This document shows positions 40,835 to 64,000 of a stretch of 64,000 nucleotides of DNA, piece after piece. The notes under the pieces are model-generated. The model saw only the letters and a program-made list of their open reading frames with translations. It did not search any database and was not told the DNA's origin. Both the position numbers and the translations under genes were made by a program. The stretch covers positions 62,001-126,000 of the IMG/VR virus record IMGVR_UViG_3300028676_000003, one strand, 5' to 3'. Each line of letters opens with the position of its first letter. The first letter of the stretch is position 1.

Positions 40835-40845
40835 TTGTTTATTTA

Positions 40846-43040: not shown

Positions 43041-43916
43041 TTATCTAAATAAATCCGCTAATTTATCCCAAAAAGTTCTTTTTTTGATATTTTTAGGTTT
43101 AGATTCTATAATAATCACTTCTTTTTTCTTATAATCTTTGTGTTCAAATATTTGAATGAAGTATTTTGTTAGTCTATGTCTTACAACTTCATTCTCAGTA
43201 AACTCAACTACATTAACCCCTTCTTCAGGGTGTAACTTAGCCATTCTAACTAATTCAAACAAACAACTTGACTCAGGGTTTTTTAAATCGACCTGATTGC
43301 TATCACCTAATGCGATAACCTTTGTATTTTCAGCAAAACGAGTAAGAAGTGTTTTACCGTTGTTATCTGTTACGTTTTGAAACTCATCAAATAAAATGAT
43401 ACAGTTTGAAAGCGAACGTCCACGAATGCTTCCGAATACTTCCATCTTAACATATCCAGCATTGATTAGTTTTCCAGTTAATTCTTCTCCGATAAGCTTA
43501 TAGAAAGCATCTAAGAATGACATCATGATGAATTTAAGTTTATCTTTTTCATCACCTGGGAGTGTACCAAGGTCCTCATCTTTTAATTGAACAATAGACT
43601 TAACCAATTTGATTTCATGATATGTGTCAGGATTATTCTTTAAAAGAATAAGAGCTTCTGCAACACTTAAAAGAGTTTTACCAGTTCCTGCTGGCCCTGT
43701 ACAAATTGTAACATCTCCTTTTTTAATTGATTGTGTAAGCTTTTTTTGAACCTCATTTTTATGTTTCAAATCAATCTTAATTTGACTTAATAAATCTTCT
43801 TTACTAGAAACTTCTTGAGCTACTACTGCATCTGTTTTTTTAACCCTAGTAGTTCTTGTTGTTCCAGTTTTTGCTGTTGATGCCGACTTCGTTGTTGAAG
43901 ATGTTTTTCGTTGCAT
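43041..43916 (-). CDS. phoH: PhoH-family ATPase
   Basis: GPAGTGKT, SIRGRSL, ILFDEFQN, LTRF, GDSNQVD, VVRH. Confidence 0.95.
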   Translation of the reverse strand: MQRKTSSTTKSASTAKTGTTRTTRVKKTDAVVAQEVSSKEDLLSQIKIDLKHKNEVQKKLTQSIKKGDVTICTGPAGTGKTLLSVAEALILLKNNPDTYHEIKLVKSIVQLKDEDLGTLPGDEKDKLKFIMMSFLDAFYKLIGEELTGKLINAGYVKMEVFGSIRGRSLSNCIILFDEFQNVTDNNGKTLLTRFAENTKVIALGDSNQVDLKNPESSCLFELVRMAKLHPEEGVNVVEFTENEVVRHRLTKYFIQIFEHKDYKKKEVIIIESKPKNIKKRTFWDKLADLFR

Positions 43917-44565
43917 GTGTGTTGTTGTTAATTCTATTATGGTTATTGAAATAGTCTACTTTTTTGTTTTGAATATCACTATAATCAATCTTTTGTACCG
44001 TCATATTTGGGAAAAAACCATAAATATTATTTGTCTTTTGTAAATCAGCGTAATAACCATCAATCGGTTTCTCACGTTTGGTAGCCAATTCAAGAATCTT
44101 ATTAAATAAGGTATCTCTAATTACAACTCCTTCTAGAGCAAATGTATTATGAAGTCTCATAATCTTTTCATTCACTTGGTCAGGAATTCCACCGTATGTA
44201 TGATTACCACCGAAATAAATCATATCCCAATCACTTGGTACGCTATTGATGTACTCTTCTAAATTAGCGATTTCAGGCATAAAGTAAACATCATCTTCAA
44301 AAATAACTACAGAAGAATATCCTTTTTCGATTGCTTCAGTTATTATATTTATATGTGTTTCCATGATTCCTAACTCACCCTTAAGCAGATTTTCGTTGTA
44401 TGTAGTTGTTGACCAATCATATAACTTTCCATCAATTGCTTGATATCTTTCAATATCATCTAAATTATGCTTAGCAAATTCCTTTAAAGAATTTTTCCAT
44501 CTGTCAGGTCTTCTTTTTAAATTAACACAAAAAGCCTTATCAAAATATTTTGTTAATACACTCAT
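43846..44565 (-). CDS. GT25-family glycosyltransferase
   Basis: CVNLKRRPDRW, AIDG, GELG..ETH, IFEDDV, DWDMIYFG. Confidence 0.88.
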   Translation of the reverse strand: MSVLTKYFDKAFCVNLKRRPDRWKNSLKEFAKHNLDDIERYQAIDGKLYDWSTTTYNENLLKGELGIMETHINIITEAIEKGYSSVVIFEDDVYFMPEIANLEEYINSVPSDWDMIYFGGNHTYGGIPDQVNEKIMRLHNTFALEGVVIRDTLFNKILELATKREKPIDGYYADLQKTNNIYGFFPNMTVQKIDYSDIQNKKVDYFNNHNRINNNTHATKNIFNNEVGINSKNWNNKNY

Positions 44566-45494
44566 TATTTTTTCTCTTTATTCTCGTATTTAGTATCTAG
44601 TTTATCTTGTCTATATCCTTCCATGATATATTCACCGTTAGTTTTTACATCAGCAATGAACTTTACAACGTAGTGTCCATTATGTGTTACAATCTTGTCG
44701 AATACCAAATTGTTATATTCGTATAAATGATTGTTTGCCGCACCTTGGGTTTTATCAGTAACAAAACCAACCTCATCTAGTTCAAGCATTGTACCACCCA
44801 TTTGAGTGTTTTCAATTACTTTTTTAATATTTGAAATGAAGAACCTACTAGCTCTGTTGTATTCATCAGGGTATAGGCTAACATAAAATTCTAATAAGTG
44901 TTTTGTTTCATCTATCTTACGAATCTTAAGTGTTTTTGTATAGTCTTCCAAATAAAAGTTAGGAGCGTTGCTTCTTTTAATCTTGATTGGTCTTTCATTT
45001 TTATCTTGTACAAAATAATCATGTCCGCTAATCTCAGCACGTGTTACCTCACCAACATCTTCATTCACTGGTTTTTCTTCCAAATTAGAGATATCAAATG
45101 TTTCATGAACACTTTTACCAATCTCAGTATTATCTACGATTAAAACAGCTGGATATGGGTCAAAACTATCTAGATTAGGTTTTGTAATCTTTAATTTTTT
45201 ATCAGCCATTTTATAAATTGGGTTATCATTTTCATCATACCCTTCTAACTTGATGGTTTTACCTTCTGTTGCTTCCATAATCTTATACATTCTCCAACGT
45301 AAATCCATAACTTCTTGAGTTATCTCACCATTGATTAATGAATCAGATATCTTTCCTTGATTTAAACGAGTTGATTGGGTTGCATCTGTTACTAACCCTT
45401 CACCTGTTTGTGATAATGCATTCTTTTCTACGTTGCTTAACGCTACAGCCGCTACAGCCGCTTGTTTTTTAACCCATTTGGTAATTTTTCCCAT
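44565..45494 (-). CDS. Hypothetical protein
   Basis: 309-aa ORF coupled within cluster. Confidence 0.7.
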   Translation of the reverse strand: MGKITKWVKKQAAVAAVALSNVEKNALSQTGEGLVTDATQSTRLNQGKISDSLINGEITQEVMDLRWRMYKIMEATEGKTIKLEGYDENDNPIYKMADKKLKITKPNLDSFDPYPAVLIVDNTEIGKSVHETFDISNLEEKPVNEDVGEVTRAEISGHDYFVQDKNERPIKIKRSNAPNFYLEDYTKTLKIRKIDETKHLLEFYVSLYPDEYNRASRFFISNIKKVIENTQMGGTMLELDEVGFVTDKTQGAANNHLYEYNNLVFDKIVTHNGHYVVKFIADVKTNGEYIMEGYRQDKLDTKYENKEKK

Positions 45495-45495
45495 T

Positions 45496-46149
45496 TTAGT
45501 TGTGTTTTAAATAACTGCAATTCAAAAGATTGAAGTTATATGTATTGTAATTTGTTTTATGTTTTGTTAGAAGATATGGTAGACTCAATTGGTCTTGTAT
45601 TGAATACATTGCATTGTGGTAAAACCAATCTTTCATTAGATTATTATCTTTATCCTTGATTAATTCTTTTGAATACATAAAGCATCCGCAAGCAAATAAC
45701 TTATCATCTACGAATTCTTCATCCTGAGTGTATTTAAGCACTTGTTTATCCATATCCTCTCCTTGGTATCGACTAATCAAATAATTATCACCACGGGCCA
45801 TAAGATTGTTCATGAAGTCTAATTCTGATTGTATTGTATTTCTATAAGGATGATTGAATAAACATAAGTCATATCCTTCTATTCCTTTTAGTAGCTGTTC
45901 AATTATTCCATCATTTAGTGTAAACTTTGAATCGGCCCAAATATAATAATCATAATCTTCATCTAATTCCCATTCAAGCATCTTAGGAATCTTACCTTTG
46001 AGTCTTGAATGTAGACTAAGTGCTCTAGATGGTGTATTTGAATCATTATAAAGAACCACATCAACATTGTACTTAGCCAATTCTTCATGGTTATTAATTA
46101 TAAGTTGTGAATGTCCACCGAAAGCACCTGATATAAGTTTTATTTTCAT
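45496..46149 (-). CDS. DUF616/TOD1-MUCI70-like glycosyltransferase
   Basis: YYIWADS, FNHPYR..I..E, QDQLSLPY. Confidence 0.7.
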   Translation of the reverse strand: MKIKLISGAFGGHSQLIINNHEELAKYNVDVVLYNDSNTPSRALSLHSRLKGKIPKMLEWELDEDYDYYIWADSKFTLNDGIIEQLLKGIEGYDLCLFNHPYRNTIQSELDFMNNLMARGDNYLISRYQGEDMDKQVLKYTQDEEFVDDKLFACGCFMYSKELIKDKDNNLMKDWFYHNAMYSIQDQLSLPYLLTKHKTNYNTYNFNLLNCSYLKHN

Positions 46150-46703
46150 TAAAAGGTTATTTTAAAGACAATTTCTTTATTGTAACCAGTATCAGTATCA
46201 AGAGTTTCAACTTCTACCAATTTAGGATTAGCTATTTTTAAAATATCATCAAAAATATCCTTAGAAATAGCCAAATCAGGAACATCTACACCATGTTGTA
46301 AATTATGCGCTAATTCCTCTGTAGCTCCGTCAGCAAATGGTATAAATAATGTGATACATAATTTTTTTGTTGCGCTATTTAAAGCATTCGCAAATATTCT
46401 TTCCCATTCATAGTTATGTTCCAATACGTGTCTCATATGAATTCCTTCAACACTTGATTCATATTCACATAAATCAATGTGTTTTTTTGTTGCAAATGGA
46501 GTATCACTTCCATCGATACCAATAGCCTGTGGACAGAATCTAAGGAAACCACCACCACCTACTCCCCAATCTTCAATTGTTTCACAGTCAGCTAAAAAAT
46601 CAGCACCAATTTGGTACGTTGATGTTTCTCCATATTTGTATGAACTTGGTATTCCTGATTTTAAATCTTTATACCAATTGTCCCATTTTCCTACATTACT
46701 CAT
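46149..46703 (-). CDS. SAM-dependent methyltransferase-like protein
   Basis: IEDWGVGGGG, GIDGS, RHVLEHN. Confidence 0.75.
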   Translation of the reverse strand: MSNVGKWDNWYKDLKSGIPSSYKYGETSTYQIGADFLADCETIEDWGVGGGGFLRFCPQAIGIDGSDTPFATKKHIDLCEYESSVEGIHMRHVLEHNYEWERIFANALNSATKKLCITLFIPFADGATEELAHNLQHGVDVPDLAISKDIFDDILKIANPKLVEVETLDTDTGYNKEIVFKITF

Positions 46704-48018
46704 TTCTTTTTAATATTGTTAATCCGTTGTTATTTGTTAAGTCTTCTAGAATACTCCAATTGGTATTCTCAGCCAAGAAATCTTCCATAGCCGTTCTAAG
46801 TCCAAGCTTCGTTGATGATTGTCCTTTAATAATCTCACTTGCATGTTGATAGATTTGCTCATCAACTCTACCAAACGTAGTTGTATCATGAAGTATGATA
46901 TACTTAGATACATTACCTTCGTGAATTCTTAATTCTGCAATTAATTGATTGTAAGTGTGAAGTGTATCTATGAAAAGAAGCTCCGTTGGTTCAATTGTTA
47001 AATTAAGAGTATCTGCCAATACAAAAGAATGATTTAGTAATTGAGTACTTTCAGTCATTATTTGTTGTATTTCATGAGTTGATTGGATATCATAAGAGAT
47101 AAGTCTTTCAGGATTTGCCATTATAAAAGCAAGAGTCGAAGCTCCCCATCTAACACCCATTTCTGTTATGTGCTTACACTCTTCACCATATCTTTTAAGA
47201 ACTGGCATGTGTTCATAAATGTCTATACTCTGTGTTACATTTGGATTAACCAAAGAAACATTATATAGTTCTGTAATTCTATTGCTCATTGCGTTTTCAT
47301 TTGTTTTTGTAAATGTTAAAAACGTAGGTCTTAAATTTGAATATTCAAAGTTAGGTTTCAAATAATGTGGATTATTATTGTCAACATAAGCTCTGATATC
47401 TTCAACACCACTCGTTTTCATTGATTTTTTTGATTGACCTTCATAGTGTATGATAGGTGAGTTTAAAACATAGGCTAAGTTAAATCCTCTTTCGTAAATA
47501 GAATGAAAGATAAAATCATCACCACAATATGTTTTAATGTAGCTTGGTAGTGTTGGAAATAATGCATGTCTAAGACTGAAATCCCATCCTTGCATATTAA
47601 CAAACGGCTCAACTACTCTATAGTTTAATTGTGTTTGTTCTGAACTATAACTCATATGGTTAGTTGAATGTACTACGATACCAACATAAGGTTCTTTATC
47701 GAAAACCGCAATGGTTGATTCAACAAAGTTGCTACATAAATTAATATCGTTATTCAAGAAACATAAGTATTCATTCTTATAGGTTGCATGAAACCAAGAC
47801 CACACATGATTAAGTGGGATATTCTCAGCATTCCTAACTATTTCTACGTTTTCGTAGTCTATTGAATCTAAAAATTCGCTAGTTCCTTCTTCGGTTGAAG
47901 CTTGGTCAACCAAAACGATTTCAAAATCATCACTTGTTTGTGTTTGTAAGTCTTTCAAACAATCTCTAGTGAACTCAATGTTATCTAAATTCACTATTAA
48001 AATTTTTAGTTTTTTCAT
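46696..48018 (-). CDS. GT2 glycosyltransferase fused to a C-terminal methyltransferase (Methyltransf_24-like)
   Basis: VLVDQAS.E.T, FLNND, CGDD; then ITEMGVRWGAS, LLFIDTLH.Y, ILHDT. Confidence 0.82.
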   Translation of the reverse strand: MKKLKILIVNLDNIEFTRDCLKDLQTQTSDDFEIVLVDQASTEEGTSEFLDSIDYENVEIVRNAENIPLNHVWSWFHATYKNEYLCFLNNDINLCSNFVESTIAVFDKEPYVGIVVHSTNHMSYSSEQTQLNYRVVEPFVNMQGWDFSLRHALFPTLPSYIKTYCGDDFIFHSIYERGFNLAYVLNSPIIHYEGQSKKSMKTSGVEDIRAYVDNNNPHYLKPNFEYSNLRPTFLTFTKTNENAMSNRITELYNVSLVNPNVTQSIDIYEHMPVLKRYGEECKHITEMGVRWGASTLAFIMANPERLISYDIQSTHEIQQIMTESTQLLNHSFVLADTLNLTIEPTELLFIDTLHTYNQLIAELRIHEGNVSKYIILHDTTTFGRVDEQIYQHASEIIKGQSSTKLGLRTAMEDFLAENTNWSILEDLTNNNGLTILKRNE

Positions 48019-49694
48019 TATATAAGTTTTTTATAAATGTCAATTATCTCCTTAGCAACAACATCACTCTTAAATTTATCTAAGTCAGTTGGTACTTCAT
48101 GTAGTGTTTTTGATATTATATCACCAGTAGCGTTAACATTATATATCCAACCTTTTTTACCACATAACCATCCTTCAATAGTTGTTCTACCTAAAAGAAT
48201 TCCAGCTGTCTCATCACATTGGTGAATAAACTTTTCGATGTTAGGTGTTGGCTCAAAATATGTCACGTGGTCATTTTGTGCAATGTATGCATCTAGCGTA
48301 GCTTCACGTTTTTTACCAACAATCCATAATTCACCACCTTCTTCTTTGGTTGTGTTAATTAAGTCTACTAGGGTTTGGATTCTCAAGAAATCAATAGTTC
48401 CAACGAATAGTGTTCTTTTCTTGGTTCTTTTTTCTGTTAGTTTAACTTCTTTAAATCTTGTTGTGTCAATTGGATTATAGATAATATCAATCATCTCACT
48501 ATCAATCCCAAATTTATCAATAAGATAGTCTTTGATTTCAGGACGAATAGCAATGTATTTTTTTACATTATCAGTAATAAAAGGTTCTTCCATTGGAATT
48601 ACTTCTGAGTGGATTGAAGTTACTATCGGAGTATTTGGATAGAACTTAGCCAAGTGTTCAGTAATTGGTTTGTGGTTTGAATGGATTACATCGAATTCTA
48701 CATTAGAAACTTTATAAAGAGTCGCTTCTTGTGATGGAATTTCACCTTGTGGTGTCTTAAGTAACCATTTACCATCCCCTAACTTATACCCAGGAGGTGA
48801 TTTCAAGTCATATGTCTTGATTCCTATACCATTAGCAATCTTATTAAGTGGATTACCCAAGTTGGCCCAAATACTAACCTCACAACCTTGTTTCATAAGT
48901 TGTTTAGCCAATTCAAAAACATATAATTCTGAACCAGTATGTGATTGTAAACTTAAACAACCAATAAGGACCTTAAGCTTCTCACCTTTACGAATAACTC
49001 TTTTTATTTCAGCTGGCAATACACTAGCATATTTTTCACTAAAATTAATACGGTTTGTTTCCCAAGAATCATTTGTTTCACCAATTGATTTATGGTTTAT
49101 TCTGATTTGAGTTGAAACTCCTACCTTAACACCTTCCAAGTAATTATCAAATGAGAATGTAACATCATAGAAATGGAATCCTTCAACTGATTCATCAAAG
49201 GTTGCTTTGATACGTGTTTTGTCAACTGCGAAGAATACACCATCAACATTTACAACTTCTTCCAAGTGTTGCCCTAAGTCATCAGAATAAGCTGATAACC
49301 AAGATTTACCACCACTAGTATGTTGTACTCTACCAAACATTTTTTTAGGGTCTTCCCACCATTTACCTGAAGAAGGCATAGCTTTACTTCCAGCAACACC
49401 AATTATTCCAAATTCAGGGTTCTTTTCAAACTGTTTAAGTAATTTATTACCCCATTGCTTAGTATCAATAGAAATATCATCATGACAAAATACAACTATA
49501 TCGTATTTCGCTTGATTTAAGCCTTGATTATATGCTGAGGTTAGTGATTGTCCACCATTGAAATATGTTGACGCAGGGTCGTTGTTATTGATGATTTCAA
49601 TAACTTCAATGTGTTTATGTAGACCAGAAGATTTGATTATATGGTCAATGTGTGGTTTATTATGTTCTTTTGTGCAATATACAACTGTTATCAT
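48018..49694 (-). CDS. GT-A plus GT-B double glycosyltransferase
   Basis: AYNQGL..A, VFCHDD, FHFYD (GT-A); TGSELYVFELA, GRTTIEGW (GT-B). Confidence 0.82.
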   Translation of the reverse strand: MITVVYCTKEHNKPHIDHIIKSSGLHKHIEVIEIINNNDPASTYFNGGQSLTSAYNQGLNQAKYDIVVFCHDDISIDTKQWGNKLLKQFEKNPEFGIIGVAGSKAMPSSGKWWEDPKKMFGRVQHTSGGKSWLSAYSDDLGQHLEEVVNVDGVFFAVDKTRIKATFDESVEGFHFYDVTFSFDNYLEGVKVGVSTQIRINHKSIGETNDSWETNRINFSEKYASVLPAEIKRVIRKGEKLKVLIGCLSLQSHTGSELYVFELAKQLMKQGCEVSIWANLGNPLNKIANGIGIKTYDLKSPPGYKLGDGKWLLKTPQGEIPSQEATLYKVSNVEFDVIHSNHKPITEHLAKFYPNTPIVTSIHSEVIPMEEPFITDNVKKYIAIRPEIKDYLIDKFGIDSEMIDIIYNPIDTTRFKEVKLTEKRTKKRTLFVGTIDFLRIQTLVDLINTTKEEGGELWIVGKKREATLDAYIAQNDHVTYFEPTPNIEKFIHQCDETAGILLGRTTIEGWLCGKKGWIYNVNATGDIISKTLHEVPTDLDKFKSDVVAKEIIDIYKKLI

Positions 49695-51979: not shown

Positions 51980-52011
51980 CAAATATACACCTTTATTTTG
52001 ACTAAAGCAAA
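51980..52011 (-). promoter_or_regulatory. Bacteroidota-type sigma70 promoter (HD-dut-guaC)
   Basis: TTTG-N20-TATATTTG. Confidence 0.8.
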
Positions 52012-52467: not shown

Positions 52468-53694
52468 TTATTTTTTTAAAAGGCTCAAGTATAAGTCTCT
52501 TCTTTGTTCAGTTACTTTATCCATAGAATATGTGTCTTTAACTGTTTCGAAAAGATTTTCTTGAAGTGTTGTTATAATTTCAGGATTATTGATTAATTTC
52601 TTAATCGCAGTATACCAATCCTTGTTATTTTTTTTGCTGTCAATCAAGATACCATTTGCTGTTGTATCAAAACCACCACCATATTGTATAGCGTTTTTAA
52701 GGTCAATTTGGTATGGCCCGAAATCTTGTGCAATTAATGCTTTTTTATGGAAACCAGCTTCAATAACCTTCAACTGACTCTTAACCTTGTTGAATACGTT
52801 TTCTTCAAGTGGTGCCAAAGAAATATCAAATAAGTTATAGTTTGTTGCATATGTTGAGATTGGTTTTGTCCAAACTCTACGGTATGCTTCATTGGTAGTA
52901 TCAAATTCTTGGTCTTGCGTGAATTTTAACAAATAATTTTTATATTCAGGGCTAACAGTAGAATAGTTGTCTGTAAAGATTTGCTCATAACGGAACCAAA
53001 CACTTTCTTTTGGTGTAATTTGTCTAGTTGTTTGTTGCTTAGTAATACTATCAATTGTTGTGTGTGTTCCTCTAACATCAAATCCGCAAAGTACAAATTG
53101 TACCTTATCTAGTAAATTATCAGCTCTTAGTTTACCAACAACTCCTTGAAGGATTTCTAAATCTTTTAAGTGAGATGAACCACCTAACCAACCAATTCTG
53201 ATTCTATCAGAAGGTTCAACGTTAGAAATAAATTGTTTTTCTTTAGGGTCGATAGCATTAGGTAAAACGTAAACATTTTTGTTTACTTTTCTAATTTCAT
53301 CAGCGAAGAATGGTGTTGTTGTTGTAACATTTCTAGCAGAACGAATATTATCAAGAATCTTTTTATCTAATTCAGCATTTTTAATAAGGTGATAAGCAGG
53401 GTGGTGTAACCCAGGAGCCCAATAATCATCCAAATCCATAATCGTTACAATTCCAAGACCGTCTAATTTTTTCAATAGATTTTCCATCTGCTCATAAGAA
53501 CCTAATGCTCTATGGTAGTGAATAATATCATATTGTTTTAAGAAAACGTCATCATCCAAGTTTATATCATATTCGATATCGATGTGAAATTCATCAGGAT
53601 ATTTATTTTCTAATGCAATGTGTGGGTTAGTACTTCTGTAGTAAGAAACACCTGTTCTATCGCTAGGAACTACTAGCACTTTTATTTTTTTCAT
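52468..53694 (-). CDS. GT-B glycosyltransferase
   Basis: GVSYYRS..PH, DLDDYW, LPNAID, IGWLGGSSH..DL, DISLAPL..N.FN..KS.LK..E. Confidence 0.85.
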   Translation of the reverse strand: MKKIKVLVVPSDRTGVSYYRSTNPHIALENKYPDEFHIDIEYDINLDDDVFLKQYDIIHYHRALGSYEQMENLLKKLDGLGIVTIMDLDDYWAPGLHHPAYHLIKNAELDKKILDNIRSARNVTTTTPFFADEIRKVNKNVYVLPNAIDPKEKQFISNVEPSDRIRIGWLGGSSHLKDLEILQGVVGKLRADNLLDKVQFVLCGFDVRGTHTTIDSITKQQTTRQITPKESVWFRYEQIFTDNYSTVSPEYKNYLLKFTQDQEFDTTNEAYRRVWTKPISTYATNYNLFDISLAPLEENVFNKVKSQLKVIEAGFHKKALIAQDFGPYQIDLKNAIQYGGGFDTTANGILIDSKKNNKDWYTAIKKLINNPEIITTLQENLFETVKDTYSMDKVTEQRRDLYLSLLKK

Positions 53695-56432: not shown

Positions 56433-59066
56433 ATGGCATTTACAACAAAATTAGACTATTCTAATAATAGACAAATCAAACAACATATAGAAACCTTCAC
56501 ACTTTTATCAGGTGGGACTGTATTTGGTGTGACTTTCAACGATTTACCAACTGGACCAAATGAATCAACAAGTGCGATTACTGAAACACATACGCTAGTA
56601 GCAAGTACGTTCTCAGGAAACAACACAACAACGAATTTCAATTGGTATCATCCTCTTATGGAATTGGGTCACCCTCAACTTTCAGCTATAACTCCATCAA
56701 ACTCAGGGGAAACACAAACCGCTTTACCTGCTTATTCTGCAACTGCATTCACAACCATTGATGGTAACGTTGCGGCTACTGAATATACAGGTTCAACATT
56801 TGATATTACTGTTATTACAATGACAGATTTAGGTGGTGGTAATTATACTGGAACACTACAAACAGATGAACTTCTTATACTTTCAGCTCAAACAGCTGAT
56901 TTTACTGGTAGAACAATATGGAATGATGTTCAAGGAATTTCTAGAACTGAAAGACTTATAGTGACAAATAACCCACAAGTTGGTTATGTATTAACTTGTG
57001 CTGATACTGAAGGTATGGCCGAATGGTCTCCATCATCAGGTGGTTCGGGTGGAACTGGTGATACATACGTAACAGGTGGTACATATAATGGTGGAACAGC
57101 AATTTTTACAAATAATACAGGTGGAACATTTAGTGTTACAGGTTGGAAATTATCAGGTGGAACTGGCCTAAATAGTCAAGCAACCGTTAATGGTAATAAT
57201 CAAGCATTAGGTGATTATTCATTAGCTGTTGGTTCAGGTTCAACAGCTTTAGGTTATGCATCGTTTGCAAGTGGTAGAAACACAATTGCTGGTAGTTTTG
57301 CTCATGCAGAAGGGATTAATACTCAAGCCAATGGCCCTGAATCTCACGCTGAGGGTGCATTTAGTATAGCTGGTGGTGCGGCATCTCATGCTGAAGGTCA
57401 AGATACTCAAGCTATTGCAAATAGGTCACACGCTGAGGGAAGCGGGACAACAGCAAATGGTGATTCAAGTCATGCTGAAGGTTCAGGAAGTATTGCAAGT
57501 GGTATAGCGTCACATGCTGAAGGTCTTCAATCACAAGCATTAGGTGTTGCTAGTCATGCTCAAGGTAATACAACAATAGCTTCAGGTCACTCATCTTTTG
57601 CTAGTGGAACATTAACAAATGCTAATGGTGCTGGTAGTTTCGTTCATGGAACTGGAAGTACCGTTAACGGTAACTATTCAATCGTATTAGGTAGAAATAT
57701 TACTGGAAATACAGCCGATACAACATATGTCGATTTTTTAAATATTAAAAATATACCAGCGGGTACACCAATAAATAATTTAGGTTATGATGCAACAGGA
57801 CGTGTAGTTATTGGTACTACTGGTGGTGGTGGAACCAATTATTGGTCTGCATCAACTGGAACAAACGCAATCGGAGTAATAAACTTTGGTGGAACAGCTT
57901 CAGGTGACTATGGTATTACAATGGGTTGGCAAACAACAGCTTCAGGGGTAATGTCTTTGGCTCAGAACTCAGGGACGACAGCTTCAGGTACTGCTTCATA
58001 TGCTGAGGGTTCATTTACAATTGCTGGTGGTGATGGAGCACATGCTGAAGGTGGTTATACTAACGCTTCAGGTTTCTTCTCTCATGCACAAGGATATGGT
58101 TGTGTTGCTAGTAATGAATTTTGTCATGCTGAAGGTTCGGGAAGTATTGCAAGTGGTCATACATCTCACGCTGAAGGTACGTTTTGTATCGCTGGTGGTT
58201 CAGATGCACATGCTCAAGGATTTAGAACACAAGCATATGGGAATGGTGCTCACTCAGGTGGACTAGAAACACAAGCAAATGGTATTGCTAGTTTTGTTCA
58301 TGGTTCAGGAAGTACAGCAAATGGAAATTACTCAATTGTATTGGGTAGATTTATCACAGGAAATACAGCTGACACAACATATGTTGATAATTTGAATATT
58401 AAGACTGTTGGAACTGGTCCTGGGACTATTGATTTAGGTGTTAATGCTTCAGGTGTTGTAGTTAATCAAGCTTCTGATGCTAGACTTAAAGAAAATGTAA
58501 ACACAATTGATAATGCTTTGGGTATCGTTATGAATCTTAGAGGTGTTAGTTATAATTGGATAGATAGAGTTAATGGTGGTAATGATTTAAGACTTGGGTT
58601 TATCGCTCAAGAAGTTCAAGAGGTTGTACCTGAATTGGTAACACAAAATGGTGAATACTTAGGTGTTCAATATAAAGATGTACCTGCGTTGCTTGTTGAA
58701 GCTATCAAGGAATTGGTTAATGGTAAAACTTTGTATACCAACACACAGATTGAAACACAAACAATTCTTGCTGAGGATAATAATATCGAACTTAATGTAA
58801 ATGGTACTACTGAAACTAGTATAGGTGGTGGTATTAAGGTATTAAACACAAAAAATGAAGAAGGATTTTCTGACTTAACTCTTAACGAAAACGGTGATTG
58901 GATAACAAATACAGGTTTTGAACCAAAAGCTATTAGTATTCCTTTCTATACTCCAACATCTTCAAATGATGAAATCGGTAGTATTGGAAACGTAACGAGA
59001 AATGATGATTATTTATACATAAAAACAACCAATGGTTGGAAACGTAGCAGTTTAGAAAGCTTTTAA
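56433..59066 (+). CDS. Tail fibre with two YadA-head-like repeat modules and an S74 intramolecular chaperone
   Basis: 14-aa SHAEG repeats; QASDARLKENV ... LRGVSYNW ... GFIAQEV ... LLVEAIKEL. Confidence 0.88.
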   Translation: MAFTTKLDYSNNRQIKQHIETFTLLSGGTVFGVTFNDLPTGPNESTSAITETHTLVASTFSGNNTTTNFNWYHPLMELGHPQLSAITPSNSGETQTALPAYSATAFTTIDGNVAATEYTGSTFDITVITMTDLGGGNYTGTLQTDELLILSAQTADFTGRTIWNDVQGISRTERLIVTNNPQVGYVLTCADTEGMAEWSPSSGGSGGTGDTYVTGGTYNGGTAIFTNNTGGTFSVTGWKLSGGTGLNSQATVNGNNQALGDYSLAVGSGSTALGYASFASGRNTIAGSFAHAEGINTQANGPESHAEGAFSIAGGAASHAEGQDTQAIANRSHAEGSGTTANGDSSHAEGSGSIASGIASHAEGLQSQALGVASHAQGNTTIASGHSSFASGTLTNANGAGSFVHGTGSTVNGNYSIVLGRNITGNTADTTYVDFLNIKNIPAGTPINNLGYDATGRVVIGTTGGGGTNYWSASTGTNAIGVINFGGTASGDYGITMGWQTTASGVMSLAQNSGTTASGTASYAEGSFTIAGGDGAHAEGGYTNASGFFSHAQGYGCVASNEFCHAEGSGSIASGHTSHAEGTFCIAGGSDAHAQGFRTQAYGNGAHSGGLETQANGIASFVHGSGSTANGNYSIVLGRFITGNTADTTYVDNLNIKTVGTGPGTIDLGVNASGVVVNQASDARLKENVNTIDNALGIVMNLRGVSYNWIDRVNGGNDLRLGFIAQEVQEVVPELVTQNGEYLGVQYKDVPALLVEAIKELVNGKTLYTNTQIETQTILAEDNNIELNVNGTTETSIGGGIKVLNTKNEEGFSDLTLNENGDWITNTGFEPKAISIPFYTPTSSNDEIGSIGNVTRNDDYLYIKTTNGWKRSSLESF

Positions 59067-59068
59067 TA

Positions 59069-60913
59069 ATGGGAAACATAAGAAATTATAATTTTAGTCT
59101 ACAAGACCTTAAATTAACGGATGCTGGGTTTTGGGATTTTTATTTAACAAATGATGCTGGTGGTGATGGTGCTTACAATTATTGTGAGCCACTTCTAACT
59201 GGAAGTTGTTCAGTTGTTTGGTATGATTTTAATAACCTAAGTATCTACACGAATTCAGCTATAACATCAAATGATATTTACAGCTTGTATACTTGGACTG
59301 GTGCAACCAATTCAGGTTATACCTTTAATACTATTGGTCTAACTGGAATTGACAATGGTTTTATTCTTTTTGATAAGTTGAGTGGTGATACTTCTAATGA
59401 AGCATTATTATCTGCCTTGACTGGAAGCACTCTTGTAATTCCTTCAGGTGATACGAGACTTCATATGAATAGAGTTAGCGGTACTACAGGTTTATATACC
59501 TATGGTGGTGATGTGATGCTTGAACCAACAAACCCTGATGTAGGTTATTTCTTTAATTTATATGGTGGATTTTATCAAGGATTCTATAAAATTGATGGTT
59601 CAACCTACGAAGTTTTGCCAGTTAGAGTAAATTACTCATGGGCCGCTGAATTTTGGTTAACAACAACACAATTCTCAGCTTCAACTGGAACTACACTAAA
59701 TGATTTTTACCCTGAAAATTCAGGATTCTTCTTTTATATTGGAACTCGTGCTGAGAATAAATTTTGGAATAAATGGGAAGGTGCAGATACTGGTTGTACT
59801 TCAGGTTGTACAGCTGATTCAGGATGTACAGATACAGTTAGTGAATGGTGTACAGTACCAAAAGAAAGTGAAATCACTCTTATTGGTGATTATGGAATTG
59901 GTATTCCGCTTGACCCACCTAGAGTTGATATTGACCTTGTTACAAACGGGTTTCTTATCTATGGTAGAGCTTGCGATTGTAGACCTGAAGAATTAACTGG
60001 TGATACTGGAAGTATCATTTACGAACCACCAATGATACTAACTGGTGACACACAACAACCTTGTAATGTTTGTCGTAAGTGTGGTGGGTGTAGTCCAACT
60101 GGTTTAGGAACTCAAACCGCTTGTTCATATGATGGTAAGGGTATTGCTGTTGCAAGTACTAGAGAGGTTCTAACAAATACTCAAAACCCATTCTTGGTTT
60201 ACGGTAGAGCAAGCAAAAATAAAGGTTGTTCATGTTGTTCAGGGCCTGAAGATGGTTTAGGTAATGAAACAGTTTGTTCATTTAGTGGGTTTACTTCAGA
60301 AGAAGTTAGTATAGATTATAACCTAGATATCATTGATAATGCTTTAGGTTTTAGAATTACACCTGAAGGTGCTATTGGATATCGTCTGCTTACCTCGACT
60401 GGAACTTGTGTTACAGAAAGTGGTGAGACTAAATATATTAGCGGTACAACGATTGAGGAAAAATATTCTGAAGATGGATTAATAAAAGATGGTTTTTGGT
60501 ATTATGTTGTTATTAAGTTTGTAACAAATTACTTAGATGATTGTGACTTAGAAACAGCGAAGCCAAGGAAAGGAAAATTAATGTTTTATATAAATGGTTT
60601 TTTAAAATTTGTCGTAGATGATTTCGATGAATTTGTAGCTAGAAGACTAGATGAATACAAAGATAAACAAGTAGGAGTACCATTCAACTTTAGCATAGGT
60701 GGTGGTTCTCAAGGACTTATTGATTCACAGACATTTGACGGGCTTGACCCTAATGATAGAGGACTACCAATTGAAACACATTTTGGTGGTACATTTATCG
60801 GTGGAATATCGCAATTCAAGTTTGATATTTGTGATTTGAGCCTTTGTAATATAAGGGAAAATTACGCTAGTCAATCTATTAGGTATGGTGTACAAGATTT
60901 ATTTACACTTTAA
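59069..60913 (+). CDS. Cys-rich virion protein with probable C-terminal LamG/ConA-like domain
   Basis: WYYVVI ... LMFYING ... FSIGG ... FIGGISQF; about 20 Cys. Confidence 0.6.
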   Translation: MGNIRNYNFSLQDLKLTDAGFWDFYLTNDAGGDGAYNYCEPLLTGSCSVVWYDFNNLSIYTNSAITSNDIYSLYTWTGATNSGYTFNTIGLTGIDNGFILFDKLSGDTSNEALLSALTGSTLVIPSGDTRLHMNRVSGTTGLYTYGGDVMLEPTNPDVGYFFNLYGGFYQGFYKIDGSTYEVLPVRVNYSWAAEFWLTTTQFSASTGTTLNDFYPENSGFFFYIGTRAENKFWNKWEGADTGCTSGCTADSGCTDTVSEWCTVPKESEITLIGDYGIGIPLDPPRVDIDLVTNGFLIYGRACDCRPEELTGDTGSIIYEPPMILTGDTQQPCNVCRKCGGCSPTGLGTQTACSYDGKGIAVASTREVLTNTQNPFLVYGRASKNKGCSCCSGPEDGLGNETVCSFSGFTSEEVSIDYNLDIIDNALGFRITPEGAIGYRLLTSTGTCVTESGETKYISGTTIEEKYSEDGLIKDGFWYYVVIKFVTNYLDDCDLETAKPRKGKLMFYINGFLKFVVDDFDEFVARRLDEYKDKQVGVPFNFSIGGGSQGLIDSQTFDGLDPNDRGLPIETHFGGTFIGGISQFKFDICDLSLCNIRENYASQSIRYGVQDLFTL

Positions 60914-60936
60914 TCAAATAAATACATAAAATAATA

Positions 60937-60944
60937 TATTTATA
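60937..60944 (+). promoter_or_regulatory. Putative late promoter (fibre)
   Basis: TATTTATA 17 nt before ATG. Confidence 0.6.
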
Positions 60945-60961
60945 AATAAAACAATTTAAAC

Positions 60962-63367
60962 ATGGCAGATAAAAAAATATCACAGTTACCTAATGGTACC
61001 ATAACACCTGAAACAATATTTCCTATTGTTGCATTGGATGTAACTTCGCAAACATCATTTAATGACCTTGTTGATGCTTTAGAACCTTATTTTAGTGGTT
61101 CTACTTCAGGTGGAAATCACTATATGATTGGTTGGGAAGTTGAACAAGAAGTTGGGTCAACTGAAACTATCGGTATAGGTAAAGGGAAAATCCGTTTAAC
61201 AAATGGTTCAAACGAAATTTTAGGTATTGATGGAGTTATATTCTCTGACACAAAAGGATATAATTCACCATTTTCAACTGGTGAAATAACAGTTATTTTA
61301 CCAAATTCATTCGGTAATAGAAGATATATAACTATGGATGATTATACTGATGACACTCATGGTACATTTATTGAAATTTTTTATGATAATAGATTAGAGG
61401 GTTCAATTGGTAGTGTTTGGGATGGTGAGACTGGTGATTATGAGTATTATGCTTATCTTATTGGAGCAACAACAAGACTTGCACATGCTGAAGGTGAAGC
61501 TACTCAAGCATTTGGTCAACGTTCACATGCTGAAGGTCTTAGAACAACTGCTAGTGGAAATTATTCACATGCTCAAGGTTCAGGTAGTATTGCTAGTGGT
61601 GATTATTCACACGCTATGGGTGCAGATACAACAGCAAGTGGTCAATTTTCATTTGCTGGTGGTGTTAATTCATTTGCAGAAGCTGACTTTTCATTTGTTT
61701 TTGGTAGCCAATCAACAGCTAGTGGTAACCATACTTTTGTATTAGGTACTAATATGACTGGAACAAATGATAACACAACATATGTTGATAGACTTAATGT
61801 TAGAACTATTGGTAGTAATTCACCAGTTATAAATTTAGGACTTGATTCTAATGGAAATGTTGTTACTGGTAGTACTGGTGGCGGTGGTTCAAGTGTTTGG
61901 GTTGCTAGTAACGGTGCAAACTCTGCTGTTATTCCTAATTTAAACAATATTGCTTATGGTGTTGGTGCTATTGCTCATGGTACAGGTACGACTGCCGCAG
62001 GTGCTTATTCACATACTGAAGGTTCAGGTACAACTGCATCAGGAAACTCAGCTCACGCTGAAGGTATGGGGTCAAGAACCCAAGGACAAGCCGCTCACGC
62101 TGAAGGTACTAATACAATTGCAAACGCAAATAATGGACACTCAGAAGGTTTAAATACTATCGTTTTAGGTGAAAATGCTCACGCTGAAGGTGAAGGTACA
62201 TCTGCTACAACAAGAAATGCGCATGCTCAAGGTTCAGGGACAACAGCATCAGGTAATAACTCACATGCTGAAGGTTCAGGTACTGTTGCATTCGGACCTA
62301 ATTCACATGCTGAAGGTTCTAATACTCAAGCAACTGGAAGTTTTTCACATGCTGAAGGTCTTCAAACTCAAGCATCAGGAGATGCATCACATGCTGAAGG
62401 TTATGGTAGTGTTGCTTCAGGTCTTTATTCACATGCTCAAAATGATACAACAATTGCTAGTGGAACATATTCACATGCAGAAGGTCATGGTGCTCAAGCT
62501 ATTGGTTATACTTCACACGCTGAAGGAAGCTCAACAGCTTATGGTTATTATTCACACGCTGAAGGTAATTCTACTGCCGCTAATGGTGACTATTCACACT
62601 CGCAAGGTAATGAAACAACCGCTAATGGTACTTATGGTTTCGTAGGTGGTTTCCAATCAACAAGTGTTGGTGAATCATCTTTTGCATATGGTACTAAGGT
62701 GAATGTATCGGGTGATTGGTCAGTTGGTACTGGAACTGGTTCAACAACTTCTAATGAAGGTTCATTTGTTCACGGTTCAGGTGCTACTTCTGATGGTCTT
62801 TGGAGTGTTGCTTTTGGTAGAAACACACAAGTATCAGGAGATTGGTCATTTGGTGCTGGTGCAGGTGTAGTTGTATCAGGTGAGTCATCTGTTGCTTTTG
62901 GATGGAATAGTATTGCTGGTGGTTATGCATCTTGTTCTATTGGTGAAAACAATAGAGCTTTAGGTTCTCGTAGTACTGCATTTGGTAGTGGTACACATGC
63001 AAATGACCAATGTTCTTTCTCTTGGGGTCAAAATACACAAGCTAACGGTGCTGGAGCAACAGCCTTTGGAGCAACAACACAAGCTAACGGTGGTGGGTCA
63101 TTTGTTGGTGGTTACTTAAGTAATGCTGACGCTAATAACTCATTCGTATTTGGTTCTGCATCAACTACTAATTCTAATGCTGACTGGTCATTCATTTTAG
63201 GTAATGGAATTACAGCAAACACACCAAATACAGTATTTGTTGAAAGACTTAGTATCAAGACAGCTGGTCCATATGCAAATGATGCGGCCGCAGATGCTGA
63301 TGTGAGTCTTGCATCAGGTGGTCTTTATACTCTAACAGGTTCAAGAGTTGTTTATAGAAAACCATAA
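60962..63367 (+). CDS. Tail fibre with two YadA-head-like repeat modules
   Basis: MADKKISQLP N-terminus; long array of 14-aa SHAEG repeats; TTYV..LN neck motifs. Confidence 0.85.
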   Translation: MADKKISQLPNGTITPETIFPIVALDVTSQTSFNDLVDALEPYFSGSTSGGNHYMIGWEVEQEVGSTETIGIGKGKIRLTNGSNEILGIDGVIFSDTKGYNSPFSTGEITVILPNSFGNRRYITMDDYTDDTHGTFIEIFYDNRLEGSIGSVWDGETGDYEYYAYLIGATTRLAHAEGEATQAFGQRSHAEGLRTTASGNYSHAQGSGSIASGDYSHAMGADTTASGQFSFAGGVNSFAEADFSFVFGSQSTASGNHTFVLGTNMTGTNDNTTYVDRLNVRTIGSNSPVINLGLDSNGNVVTGSTGGGGSSVWVASNGANSAVIPNLNNIAYGVGAIAHGTGTTAAGAYSHTEGSGTTASGNSAHAEGMGSRTQGQAAHAEGTNTIANANNGHSEGLNTIVLGENAHAEGEGTSATTRNAHAQGSGTTASGNNSHAEGSGTVAFGPNSHAEGSNTQATGSFSHAEGLQTQASGDASHAEGYGSVASGLYSHAQNDTTIASGTYSHAEGHGAQAIGYTSHAEGSSTAYGYYSHAEGNSTAANGDYSHSQGNETTANGTYGFVGGFQSTSVGESSFAYGTKVNVSGDWSVGTGTGSTTSNEGSFVHGSGATSDGLWSVAFGRNTQVSGDWSFGAGAGVVVSGESSVAFGWNSIAGGYASCSIGENNRALGSRSTAFGSGTHANDQCSFSWGQNTQANGAGATAFGATTQANGGGSFVGGYLSNADANNSFVFGSASTTNSNADWSFILGNGITANTPNTVFVERLSIKTAGPYANDAAADADVSLASGGLYTLTGSRVVYRKP

Positions 63368-63373
63368 TAATAT

Positions 63374-63616
63374 ATGCCAATATTAATAAAAAAAATAAGT
63401 GGAGAAGCCTTAAAGAATGTTAGCGATAGCATTCTTTATGTTTCTGCCATTAACGGACAAATTCAAAGAGAAGACTATATTAATTTATATGGTTTCATTG
63501 GATATACCCAAAACTTAAGCAGAGTTGAAGAGACTTCATTATTGAATAAACCTTCACCTTTTGGGTTAAAAAATGCTTATGATAATACAATAGTTACACT
63601 AGAAATAAATTATTAA
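63374..63616 (+). CDS. Hypothetical protein
   Basis: 80-aa ORF. Confidence 0.6.
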   Translation: MPILIKKISGEALKNVSDSILYVSAINGQIQREDYINLYGFIGYTQNLSRVEETSLLNKPSPFGLKNAYDNTIVTLEINY

Positions 63617-64000
63617 TGAGATATCAAGAACGCATATACATACAAAATGAGAATAAAGCTGTTAGAAATAAAGACATTTTAAATGTTAACATGAGTTCTG
63701 ACATTTGTATTTTCGAGACACCTATGTTTTCATTCAGTGGTGGTACGAAATTAGACTGTAGCACAGGTGCTACCAGTGGTACATCTTATGTTATTACAGG
63801 TTCTACAGATACAATTCCTTTAACGTTTGATTTTACAGCAAATACAAGCAGTTTTATTAACACAAATGCGATATTTAAATACGAAATCTATAAGTATTCA
63901 GATGCAATTGGTGAATTCAACTCAACAGCCGTTTACAAATCAAACCAAATTCCATATTCTGCATTTAGCGCAACAAATTCTACTACACAATATATTCCTT
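63616..64000 (+). CDS. Virion protein, partial (runs off window)
   Basis: TAATG-coupled ATG at 63616; frame open to the end (MRYQERIYIQ ... FSGGT ... TGAT ... TGST). Confidence 0.7.
   Translation, partial: MRYQERIYIQNENKAVRNKDILNVNMSSDICIFETPMFSFSGGTKLDCSTGATSGTSYVITGSTDTIPLTFDFTANTSSFINTNAIFKYEIYKYSDAIGEFNSTAVYKSNQIPYSAFSATNSTTQYIP

Follow-up and report, generated by a model that had tools for sequence, protein, structure and literature searches.

Glycosylation of proteins by dedicated enzymes in the cytoplasm or periplasm has been described in several settings. In Gram-positive bacteria, SdgA/SdgB and GtfA/GtfB are GT4-family cytoplasmic O-GlcNAc transferases, soluble GT-B/GT4 enzymes that glycosylate Ser in a short sequence motif on surface fibre-like proteins before export; their targets are the long tandem SD or Ser-rich repeats of Ser-Asp-repeat and serine-rich adhesins. 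In Bacteroidota, general O-glycosylation is directed by the sequon D-(S/T)-(A/I/L/V/M/T) and acts in the periplasm on exported proteins, with a lipid-linked glycan. Among viruses, chlorovirus PBCV-1 carries a cluster of cytoplasmic glycosyltransferases that glycosylate its major capsid protein at non-canonical acceptor motifs, independently of the host machinery. Virion glycosylation by phage-encoded enzymes has so far been documented experimentally only for mycobacteriophages, where glycosyltransferases reportedly decorate the C-termini of capsid and tail-tube subunits inside the host cell (Freeman et al. 2023, as cited in PMC12619734), and no acceptor rule is known. The 'moraphages' and related huge aquatic phages, which are predicted to infect Flavobacteriia, encode several core glycosyltransferase orthogroups, and virion glycosylation was listed as one of their possible roles (PMC12619734). 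Literature searches for phage glycoproteomics or a phage sequon returned nothing relevant.

Here we analyzed a 64,000-nucleotide stretch (hereafter, the window; positions 62,001 to 126,000 of IMG/VR record IMGVR_UViG_3300028676_000003) of a 369-kb jumbo phage. In a preliminary description of this sequence, a four-residue motif, [ST]-G-x-T, was reported to saturate exterior virion proteins and, given the adjacent block of glycosyltransferase (GT) genes, was proposed to be the sequon of an undescribed, cytoplasmic, phage-encoded system that coats the virion with glycans, with a structural beta-turn as the alternative.

The [ST]GxT motif is concentrated in tail and fibre proteins

The observation of motif enrichment was confirmed, and all of the original hand counts were reproduced. 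The principal motif carriers in the window are:
56433..59066 (+), 877-aa tail fibre with a motif-rich N-terminal part, YadA-head-type SHAEG repeats and a C-terminal Peptidase_S74 chaperone domain
59069..60913 (+), 614-aa Cys-rich virion protein with a predicted concanavalin A/LamG-type jelly-roll, the densest motif carrier
60962..63367 (+), 801-aa second YadA-head-repeat fibre
63616..64000 (+), start of a 477-aa protein of unknown family that runs past the window end (to window position 65049)
34392..35798 (-), 468-aa protein of unknown family next to the head and neck genes

The 614-aa protein contains 15 copies against 1.2 expected, a count that none of 1000 shuffles reached, and 15 of its 23 [ST]G dipeptides have T at +3. 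The 877-aa fibre contains 17 copies against 3.6 expected, 9 of them in residues 1-241. The 468-aa protein is modestly enriched (4 against 0.7, p 0.004), and the 477-aa protein has 3 copies within the window and 7 against 0.76 over its full length. The second fibre is only weakly enriched (7 against 3.1), with most copies inside the repeats. The 2 copies in the 6496-7347 product and the single copy in the major capsid protein (MCP; 28626-30452; 0.65 expected) are not significant, and the ClpC-like protein (10591-13113), TerL (20556-22361) and portal (22410-24476) have none. Across the 509 ORFs of the genome, 154 copies were observed against 69 expected, and the excess sits in genes at window positions 56.4-85.5 kb, which extend past the window end; the rest of the genome has an observed-to-expected ratio (O/E) of 1.38, the same as the control phages.

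In the non-repeat parts of eight exterior tail and fibre proteins (3942 aa), we found 64 copies against 9.6 expected (p 4.5e-31). Each fixed position is sharply defined: position 0 accepts only S (7.6-fold) or T (6.0-fold), not N or D; position +1 is G (6.7-fold) or, more weakly, A (3-fold); and position +3 is T only (S 1.6-fold; V and I not enriched). Among about 16,400 gapped tripeptide patterns, SG.T and TG.T are the top ones that are not YadA repeats, and they are the top two overall in a relative that lacks those repeats near the locus (G004). The motif is enriched only in the coding frame (78 against 14.1, with the other five frames at expectation), and codon usage inside the motif is ordinary. 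The copies are dispersed, and the proteins are not paralogous apart from the two YadA fibres and one shared 31-aa piece.

The fibre matches PF05658 and PF13884 as well as PHROG tail fibre families, whereas no Pfam or PHROG match was found for the 614-aa and 468-aa proteins and no PHROG match for the 477-aa protein. The AF2 model of the 614-aa protein (pLDDT 67.5) matched CBM40, pentraxin and phage LamG/ConA-like virion proteins in a Foldseek search. Judging from the DSSP states of this model alone, 13 of the 15 position-0 residues are in coil; the local structure of the sites is heterogeneous (helix end, long loops, a hairpin and mid-strand). The family of this protein comprises more than 1696 clusters at 90% identity, with a mean of 11.9 motifs against 1.1 expected. 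Of these, 7.9 motifs per sequence lie in conserved columns, a further 3.0 in columns held by 10-50% of the sequences and 1.0 in sporadic columns, spread over 53 columns; the control patterns [ND]G.T, [ST]G.S and T.G[ST] are at or below expectation.

Distribution of the motif among related phages

A megablast search with positions 56433-64000 and a tblastn search with the 614-aa protein against the phage collection found nothing, and a search with the MCP reached only distant T4-like phages at 42-44% identity or less. The enrichment is not a general property of phage fibres: T4, S-PM2, Flavobacterium phage immuto and an uncultured huge phage (LR756508) have no protein with p<1e-3, and neither do two related jumbo phage genomes, G013 and G015, whereas the seven genomes or part-genomes that carry the glycosyltransferase described below have 1-7 such proteins each. 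The enrichment runs through a very large clade of 340-390 kb aquatic jumbo phages and was replicated in more than 100 independent contigs, with the exception of one nested subclade where it falls to chance. Homologs of the 614-aa protein have O/E of 11.1 in clade A and 11.9 in clade B, which both carry this glycosyltransferase, and 0.7 in the nested motif-free clade, which lacks it, and their 10-kb flanks have O/E of 3.6, 2.4 and 1.1, respectively. At aligned motif columns, the motif-free clade keeps the Gly but has N, K, D or A in place of S/T; for example, V[ST]GNT becomes VNGNN. No comparable dispersed pattern that could be a replacement motif was found in this clade.

A single glycosyltransferase gene tracks the motif

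The GT genes of the window are:
40037..42006 (-), pair of a GT2 (265 aa) and a 386-aa GT-B-like protein, core genes
43846..48018 (-), variable GT genes: GT25 (43846-44565), TOD1/MUCI70-like (45496-46149), a 184-aa ORF and a 440-aa GT2 (46696-48018); the 309-aa ORF at 44565-45494 inside this stretch is core
48018..49694 (-), 558-aa two-domain GT (Glyco_tranf_2_5 plus GT4)
52468..53694 (-), 408-aa GT-like protein with a predicted GT-B fold of the GT4 type (hereafter, GT4), without a motif copy of its own

In an unbiased screen of all 509 ORFs, the GT4 gene was the only non-structural one present in the motif-positive relatives G004, G006 and G017 and absent from the motif-free G013 and G015; the only other gene with this pattern is the 877-aa fibre. 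Among complete genomes, nine are GT4-positive, with 2-16 motifs in the homolog of the 614-aa protein, and two are GT4-negative, with 0 motifs. However, the GT4-free, motif-free sequences form one clade (100% aLRT) nested among GT4-positive lineages, so that the association rests on about one independent loss event, plus a 38-kb fragment of uncertain placement, and this clade might differ in host or habitat in ways that explain both losses. Several motif-positive contigs lack a detectable GT4; all of these are incomplete (10-61%), and in the two complete genomes of their subclade, the GT4 lies about 190-200 kb from the locus, but these contigs are not positive evidence either. In most clade A relatives, the GT4 gene lies 4-6 kb upstream of the fibre module. 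In several relatives, it carries inteins, which usually sit in conserved, important genes. The contig G019, an apparent counter-example that is motif-rich without a GT4, was rejected as such because its two extreme proteins consist of collagen-like or PTGE repeats, the contig ends 13 kb upstream of the locus, and a complete genome of the same sublineage (G059), whose 614-aa homolog has the same length and motif count, has the GT4. GT4 homologs in contigs of prokaryote metagenome-assembled genomes were phage-like fragments whose flanks mostly lack structural genes; only one was informative, a rumen-derived contig with a 45%-identical GT4 and an adjacent 614-aa homolog with 5 motifs against 0.43 expected.

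The other GT genes follow the motif less strictly or not at all. Homologs of the 558-aa protein are found in motif-positive records and are absent from the motif-free clade, but also from motif-positive G017, and only the N-terminal GT2_5 domain, roughly the first 235-245 residues, is conserved in the more distant relatives. The GT2 at 40037 and the GT-B-like gene at 40846-42006, which contains a weak Glycos_transf_1 hit, are retained in G013 and G015 and are not linked to the motif. The variable GT genes have no homolog in the four whole genomes compared (G004, G006, G013 and G015). The presence of a GT2 (PF00535) was rejected as the correlate because nearly all genomes, including motif-free ones, have at least one.

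The AF2 model of the GT4 (pLDDT 92.6, pTM 0.89) is a confident GT-B fold with two Rossmann-like domains, and Foldseek matched it to GlgM, BshA, MshA, PglA and PimA (E about 1e-13, TM 0.58-0.64), and also to the protein O-GlcNAc transferase SdgB. By sequence, the protein shows only a weak match to Pfam Glyco_transf_4 (24.8 bits, E 2.5e-5, below the 28.5-bit cut-off) and no NCBIfam hit; searches of PDB with the sequences of two of the GTs yielded no useful hits. The canonical E-x7-E catalytic/sugar-binding motif is missing from the C-terminal domain, the only such spacing starting at E152 in the N-terminal half; P295 and E312 are invariant and E297/E298 are present, but the spacing is 13-14 residues. 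The protein is therefore GT4-like by fold, whereas strict family membership is unproven. A complex prediction of the GT4 with residues 98-146 of the 614-aa protein, which include four motifs, scored 0.02, a value that gives no answer in either direction.

A candidate O-glycosylation sequon and alternative explanations

The interpretation offered in the preliminary description is partly supported. Equal enrichment in phages lacking the GT cluster had been set beforehand as a refuting condition, and the hypothesis survived it: the enrichment disappears in related jumbo phages that lack one GT. The replacement of S/T next to a retained Gly argues against the beta-turn alternative. Three refinements are needed: only the GT4, and less strictly the GT2_5 domain of the 558-aa protein, rather than the GT block as a whole, tracks the motif; the targets would be tail proteins, namely fibres, sheath insertion domains and the LamG-like protein, and not the capsid; and glycosylation remains an inference from comparative evidence.

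The explanation that we consider somewhat more likely than not is that [ST]GxT is the acceptor motif of a phage-encoded cytoplasmic protein O-glycosyltransferase, the GT4. The analysis establishes that the motif is under protein-level selection in surface-exposed tail proteins, that it is gained and lost at many sites across a very large jumbo phage clade, and that its presence coincides with one gene, that of the GT4. The activity of the enzyme and everything that follows is inferred from this correlation, without any observed glycan, mass shift or enzyme activity. In this view, during late infection, the soluble enzyme would use a nucleotide sugar to put a first sugar on the Ser/Thr at position 0, the likely acceptor because S and T interchange freely there whereas +3 is strictly Thr; the Gly (or Ala) at +1 would give room and flexibility in the active-site cleft, and Thr at +3 would act as a recognition handle. 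The sites would lie in exposed loops, and the neighbouring GTs, that is, the 558-aa protein and the strain-specific GT25, TOD1-like and GT2 genes, would extend the sugar into a lineage-specific glycan. The likely benefit, which is speculative, is a glycan coat that protects or solubilises the tail, for example, against proteases or unproductive sticking. The non-target proteome shows no depletion of the motif, although depletion might be expected if the bare motif sufficed for modification.

It remains possible, although we consider it rather unlikely, that the motif and the GT4 gene are both markers of the same lineages with no enzyme-substrate link. The GT4 would then act on something else, such as phage DNA, a host envelope glycan or a small molecule, and [ST]GxT would be a site for a different modification, such as phosphorylation, or a contact motif for an assembly factor or a host surface component. 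Apart from the single loss event, this reading is favoured by the closest structural matches of the GT4, which are small-molecule and lipid-linked sugar transferases (BshA, MshA, GlgM and PglA), and by the location of the GT block among nucleotide metabolism genes (dUTPase/dCTP-deaminase-like, HD, GMP-reductase-like and PhoH), which, together with a ThyA-family gene in the genome, means that DNA glycosylation cannot be excluded. However, the ThyA-family gene is also present in motif-free G015, no TET/JBP-type gene was found (although this search detected none in any control genome either and is uninformative), the only non-structural gene matching the distribution of a motif built around hydroxyl residues is a glycosyltransferase, and this gene usually lies right next to the fibre module.

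A purely structural role, as a turn, a strand cap or an ST-turn followed by a beta-branched residue favoured by the Gly/Ser/Thr-rich tail proteins of this lineage, appears less likely still. Eight positions are conserved in more than 50% of the family members, Gly is retained even in motif-free relatives, +2/+3 begin a beta-strand in a third of the sites, one site is a two-residue hairpin, and T at +3 alternates with V or I at a few columns, so that part of the motif is structural. However, N and D, the classic turn formers before Gly, are not enriched at position 0 in motif-positive phages, yet replace S/T in motif-free relatives with the same fold; moreover, the local structure is heterogeneous, the carriers have unrelated folds, about 4 motifs per sequence lie in non-conserved columns, and the fibres and sheaths of T4, S-PM2, immuto and the GT4-free clade show no enrichment. 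A statistical or compositional artefact, or a DNA-level signal, was tested and is not supported. Collagen-like G-x-T repeats do generate false counts in G019 (64 copies in 1007 aa), and YadA repeats contribute some copies in the two fibres, but the enrichment holds after removal of the repeats and after masking of collagen-like runs, the pattern ranks top in two genomes, and the signal is limited to the coding frame.

Whether a globally distributed clade of aquatic jumbo phages, probably infecting Bacteroidota, runs its own cytoplasmic O-glycosylation pathway, in which a dedicated GT4-like enzyme reads [ST]GxT and coats tail fibres, the sheath surface and a lectin-like tail protein with glycans diversified by variable accessory GTs, is in our estimate about an even question. 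If so, this would be the first defined O-glycosylation sequon for any virus of prokaryotes and a compact enzyme-plus-tag pair, the short genetically encodable tag being usable for cytoplasmic glycoengineering. It would explain why many huge aquatic phages keep core GTs and would predict that the tail surfaces of an abundant phage group are sugar-coated, affecting adsorption, protease resistance and particle behaviour in water, with the modified peptides missed by metaproteomic searches. If not, an unexplained and very specific sequence constraint remains on the tail proteins of more than a thousand phage lineages. A four-residue rule, a named candidate enzyme and a natural loss-of-function clade are all available here.

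Comparison with known glycosylation systems

The 'moraphages' are, like the phage analyzed here, large T4-like aquatic phages with ClpA/ClpC-like proteins and PhoH, but their genomes are 200-307 kb, compared with 340-390 kb in this clade, and neither an acceptor motif nor a specific link between a GT and its target was reported for them (PMC12619734). The sequon of Bacteroidota, the probable host phylum, likewise directs O-glycosylation to Ser/Thr, but it is a different motif, as stated in the preliminary description, and is under-represented in the exterior proteins (13 against 22.3 expected); Asp is not enriched at -1 of [ST]GxT, and the Bacteroidota system acts in the periplasm, whereas phage proteins assemble in the cytoplasm. 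The mycobacteriophage systems share with our proposal the decoration of virion proteins by phage-encoded GTs inside the host cell. However, the MCP of this phage has one motif copy and the portal none, and the copies in the carrier proteins are internal, in loops of fibres, sheath insertions and the LamG-like protein, rather than in C-terminal tails of the capsid or of the tail tube, the gene for which was not identified here; the host phylum and the morphotype (jumbo T4-like myovirus) differ as well.

The predicted GT4 resembles SdgA/SdgB and GtfA/GtfB in its GT-B/GT4-type fold, its inferred cytoplasmic action and the proposed use of a short motif on surface fibre-like proteins. It differs from them in that the motif is dispersed in globular and fibrous phage proteins, sequence identity is only 13-17%, a DUF1975-type acceptor domain is lacking, and the system is encoded by a phage. 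With PBCV-1, the proposed system shares a GT cluster carried by a large DNA virus and non-canonical acceptor motifs independent of the host machinery, but the PBCV-1 glycans are N-linked on the capsid of a eukaryotic virus, whereas O-linked sites on tail proteins of a bacteriophage are proposed here.

Genomic context of the analyzed window

The window (bases 62001-126000) of the single 368,549-bp IMG/VR virus contig, about 33% G+C, encodes a T4-type Gp23 major capsid protein (28626-30452), TerL, portal and an 840-aa ClpC/ClpA-type AAA+ chaperone-protease ATPase (10591-13113; PHROG 4871, E-value 2e-253). The closest deposited capsid proteins are only 42-44% identical and belong to uncultured huge phages and to Flavobacterium phage immuto, so that a Bacteroidota host is plausible, although this inference rests on distant similarity alone. 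Broadly similar 'moraphages', with core glycosyltransferases and predicted Flavobacteriia hosts, were described in 2025 (PMC12619734). A second IMG/VR contig (IMGVR_UViG_3300030838_000001, 274 kb) carries identical copies of the 614-aa protein, the GT4-like glycosyltransferase and the 558-aa glycosyltransferase discussed below, and is probably the same phage assembled separately.

The [ST]GxT motif in exterior tail proteins

The observation made in the preliminary description, that [ST]GxT is packed into exterior virion proteins, was confirmed, every count given there was reproduced, and the signal is much stronger than could have been known at that stage. The 614-aa protein contains 15 copies of the motif against 1.2 expected; the first fibre contains 17 against 3.6, nine of which precede its repeats; the partial ORF at 63616 contains three within the window; and the ClpC-like ATPase, TerL and portal contain none. 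Across the whole genome, 154 copies were detected against 69 expected, and the excess sits in a run of late genes located at window positions 56.4-85.5 kb, whereas the rest of the genome shows an observed to expected ratio (O/E) of 1.38, the same as the control phages. The products of the motif-enriched late genes are:

56433-59066, tail fibre with YadA-head repeats and a Peptidase_S74 chaperone domain
59069-60913, 614-aa protein with a predicted concanavalin A/LamG-type jelly-roll
60962, second tail fibre with YadA-head repeats
proteins of 477 aa, 713 aa and 526 aa
a 243-aa LamG-like-looking protein
the 944-aa tail sheath, in its insertion regions (residues about 200-255 and 540-570)

After removal of the YadA-type SHAEG repeats of the two fibres (Pfam PF05658), the remaining 3942 residues of the eight exterior proteins contain 64 copies against 9.6 expected (p 4.5e-31). 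Position 0 is S or T only, with N, D and every other residue at or below chance; position +1 is G, with A enriched threefold; and position +3 is T only, with S at 1.6x and V and I not enriched. In an unbiased scan of about 16,400 gapped tripeptide patterns, SG.T and TG.T come directly after the YadA-repeat patterns, and in G004, a complete genome of a motif-positive relative where no such repeats are nearby, they are the top two patterns. The flanking positions carry little information. The enriched proteins are not paralogous, with the exception of the two YadA fibres and one shared 31-residue module of the form TGGTYN..T.TNN.GGTF.VTG, which is itself made of overlapping [ST]GxT copies and is shared, at 68% identity, between residues 210-238 of the fibre 56433-59066 and residues 97-127 of an otherwise unrelated tail protein encoded at genome positions 142071-143651 (window 80071-81651). 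The signal is present only in the coding frame (78 against 14.1, with the other five frames at expectation), and codon usage is normal; the selection therefore acts on the protein.

The 614-aa protein belongs to no Pfam or PHROG family. Its AF2 model (pLDDT 67.5) contains a concanavalin A/LamG-type jelly-roll that matches CBM40, pentraxins and many phage LamG-like virion proteins. This protein represents a very large family of more than 1696 clusters at 90% identity, many of which lie on 340-376 kb contigs, and the family members carry 6-18 copies of the motif, with a mean of 11.9 against 1.1 expected. In the model, 13 of the 15 position-0 residues are in coil, and the local contexts vary, including a helix end, long loops, a hairpin and mid-strand. 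The protein also contains 21 Cys, many of which are invariant across the family (C243, C247, C261, C492, C588); in residues 241-262 and 330-395, these include a T-G-C-T / S-G-C-T / S-G-C-T cluster and CxxC-type runs in low-confidence loops, suggestive of metal binding or disulfides in a cytoplasmically assembled virion protein.

The enrichment is not simply a property of phage fibres. T4, cyanophage S-PM2, Flavobacterium phage immuto and the first 240 kb of the uncultured huge phage LR756508 contain no protein with p<1e-3, and their genome-wide O/E is 1.3-1.7.

Distribution of the motif among related phages

Searching IMG/VR with the 614-aa family yielded 80 loci, and a second search seeded from distant members yielded 78 more, each with 10-kb flanks. 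In most of these loci (denoted L), both the homolog of the 614-aa protein and the neighboring fibre genes are enriched, although these neighbors are variable and often unrelated. Some relatives encode giant neighboring proteins of 1800-3200 aa with 43-108 [ST]GxT copies at O/E 4.6-4.8 (L061:395-9997, L064:13595-19585 and L076:2174-7573), which might be repeat-driven. In the relative G019, collagen-like (G-x-T)n and PTGE-repeat proteins (L217:387-3410 and G019 181699-183513) inflate the motif counts (64 in 1007 aa) and must be masked in any motif survey. By contrast, one group of about 30%-identical homologs contains zero copies and has flanks at chance. Analysis of whole genomes of relatives (denoted G) confirmed this: G013 (339 kb, terminal repeats, complete) and G015 (279 kb) encode no enriched protein, whereas G004 and G006 (both complete), G017 and G008 encode 3-7 each. 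Base composition is not the cause, because G015 has the same G+C as the window genome.

To identify genes that share the distribution of the motif, all 509 ORFs of the genome were compared by BLAST with motif-positive G004, G006 and G017 and with motif-free G013 and G015. Exactly two genes are present in all the positives and absent from both negatives, namely, the 408-aa glycosyltransferase at 52468-53694 and the fibre 56433, which is itself a motif carrier. The rest of the glycosyltransferase block, which the preliminary description had linked to the motif as a whole, behaves differently:

40037-40834, GT2, also present in motif-free genomes
40846-42006, 386-aa GT-B-like protein, also present in motif-free genomes
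44565-45494, 309-aa ORF, also present in motif-free genomes
43846, GT25, with no homolog in any of the four whole genomes compared at this step (G004, G006, G013, G015)
45496, TOD1-like, with no homolog in these four genomes
46149, ORF, with no homolog in these four genomes
46696, GT2, with no homolog in these four genomes
48018-49694, 558-aa GT2_5+GT4 protein, present in most positives but missing from G017

Directly beside this block, at 39308-40036, lies a gene for a 242-aa protein with a weak sigma-70 region 2 match, which is conserved in all four compared genomes and may be a phage late sigma factor. Nucleotide-metabolism genes (GMP-reductase/IMPDH-like, dUTPase/dCTP-deaminase-like and HD-domain genes at 49787-51990, as well as PhoH at 43041-43916) are interleaved with the glycosyltransferases, and a ThyA-family gene is located at 14662-15780, so that DNA base modification in this phage is possible. 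A 309-aa protein with a C-terminal zinc-ribbon (32669-33598) is present in motif-positive G004 and G006 but has no homolog in G013 or G015.

The 408-aa glycosyltransferase (hereafter GT4) was then searched across 71 related records and directly in the flanks, and was found in every motif-positive record of adequate completeness. All nine complete motif-positive genomes encode it (G000, G003, G004, G005, G006, G043, G050, G058 and G059), whereas both complete motif-free genomes (G013 and G063) and all 14 zero-copy loci lack it. Summed over non-identical loci, the O/E of the 614-aa homolog is 11.1 in clade A (GT4+), 11.9 in clade B (GT4+) and 0.7 in the GT4-free clade, and the respective values for the flanks are 3.6, 2.4 and 1.1. 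No GT4 was detected in eleven motif-positive fragments, but these are only 10-61% complete, and in the two complete genomes of their subclade, the GT4 gene lies about 190-200 kb from the locus. A yak-rumen contig with a 45%-identical GT4 has an adjacent homolog of the 614-aa protein with 5 copies against 0.43. In the tree of the 614-aa family, however, the GT4-free, motif-free sequences form a single well-supported clade (100% aLRT, 15 rows) nested among GT4-positive lineages. The simplest history is a single joint loss, plus possibly a second one in the 38-kb fragment L309/L122, so that the correlation, although clean, amounts to about one independent event.

The candidate enzyme

The 408-aa protein is predicted with high confidence (pLDDT 92.6) to adopt the GT-B fold. 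Its best structural matches are retaining GT4 enzymes (GlgM, BshA, MshA, PglA and PimA), with TarM and the protein O-GlcNAc transferase SdgB appearing further down the list. Because the Pfam support is sub-threshold and the classical E-x7-E spacing is absent, we refer to this protein as GT4-like by fold. Its residue E312 is invariant. Prediction of its complex with a four-motif peptide gave no answer. In several relatives (L056:2314-5775, L063:1496-3646, L073:4016-6241 and L107:3230-5482), the gene encodes 716-1153 aa due to insertions at two different sites, after about residue 182 and about residue 306. These insertions carry LAGLIDADG homing-endonuclease domains and, in L056 and L107, also intein-splicing domains; interruption by inteins is a hallmark of conserved, important genes.

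Interpretation and alternative explanations

The analysis itself establishes the specificity of the motif, its restriction to exterior tail proteins, and its coupling to the GT4 gene, the latter within the limits of about one independent event. That the GT4 transfers a sugar from a nucleotide sugar to the Ser/Thr at position 0, where S and T interchange freely while +3 is strictly T, is inferred, as are its action on exposed loops in the cytoplasm and the extension of the glycan by the other glycosyltransferases. The benefit, whether protection, solubility or avoidance of unproductive binding, is speculative. The interpretation offered in the preliminary description, a phage-encoded cytoplasmic system modifying a dedicated sequon, is thus supported in part: it passed the computational tests that could have refuted it, but remains unproven.

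We consider the sequon model somewhat more likely than not. A coupling between the motif and the GT4 without a direct enzyme-substrate link is possible but unlikely, a purely structural role of the motif appears less likely still, and an artefact is highly improbable. With respect to the structural alternative, at the aligned motif columns the GT4-free clade retains the Gly but has N, K, D or A in place of S/T, and sometimes N in place of T; for example, V[ST]GNT becomes VNGNN, and [ST]GYT becomes KGYT, NGYT or DGYT. The turn or loop therefore survives without the hydroxyl residues, which is hard to reconcile with a purely structural reason for S/T and is compatible with S/T being maintained only while the transferase is present. 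Within the family, about four copies per sequence lie in non-conserved columns, spread over 53 columns in all, and the control patterns ([ND]G.T, [ST]G.S, T.G[ST] and [ST]G.[VI]) are at or below chance. Some of the motif is still structural, given that the Gly is conserved and the Thr at +3 often begins a strand.

Comparison with known glycosylation systems

The proposed system is not the Bacteroidota general O-glycosylation system, whose sequon is under-represented here (13 against 22.3). The working analogy is with the GT4 protein O-glycosyltransferases of Gram-positive adhesins (SdgB, GtfA) and with mycobacteriophage virion glycosylation. The proposed system differs from the former in the motif and the type of target, and from the latter in the target proteins and the position of the sites.
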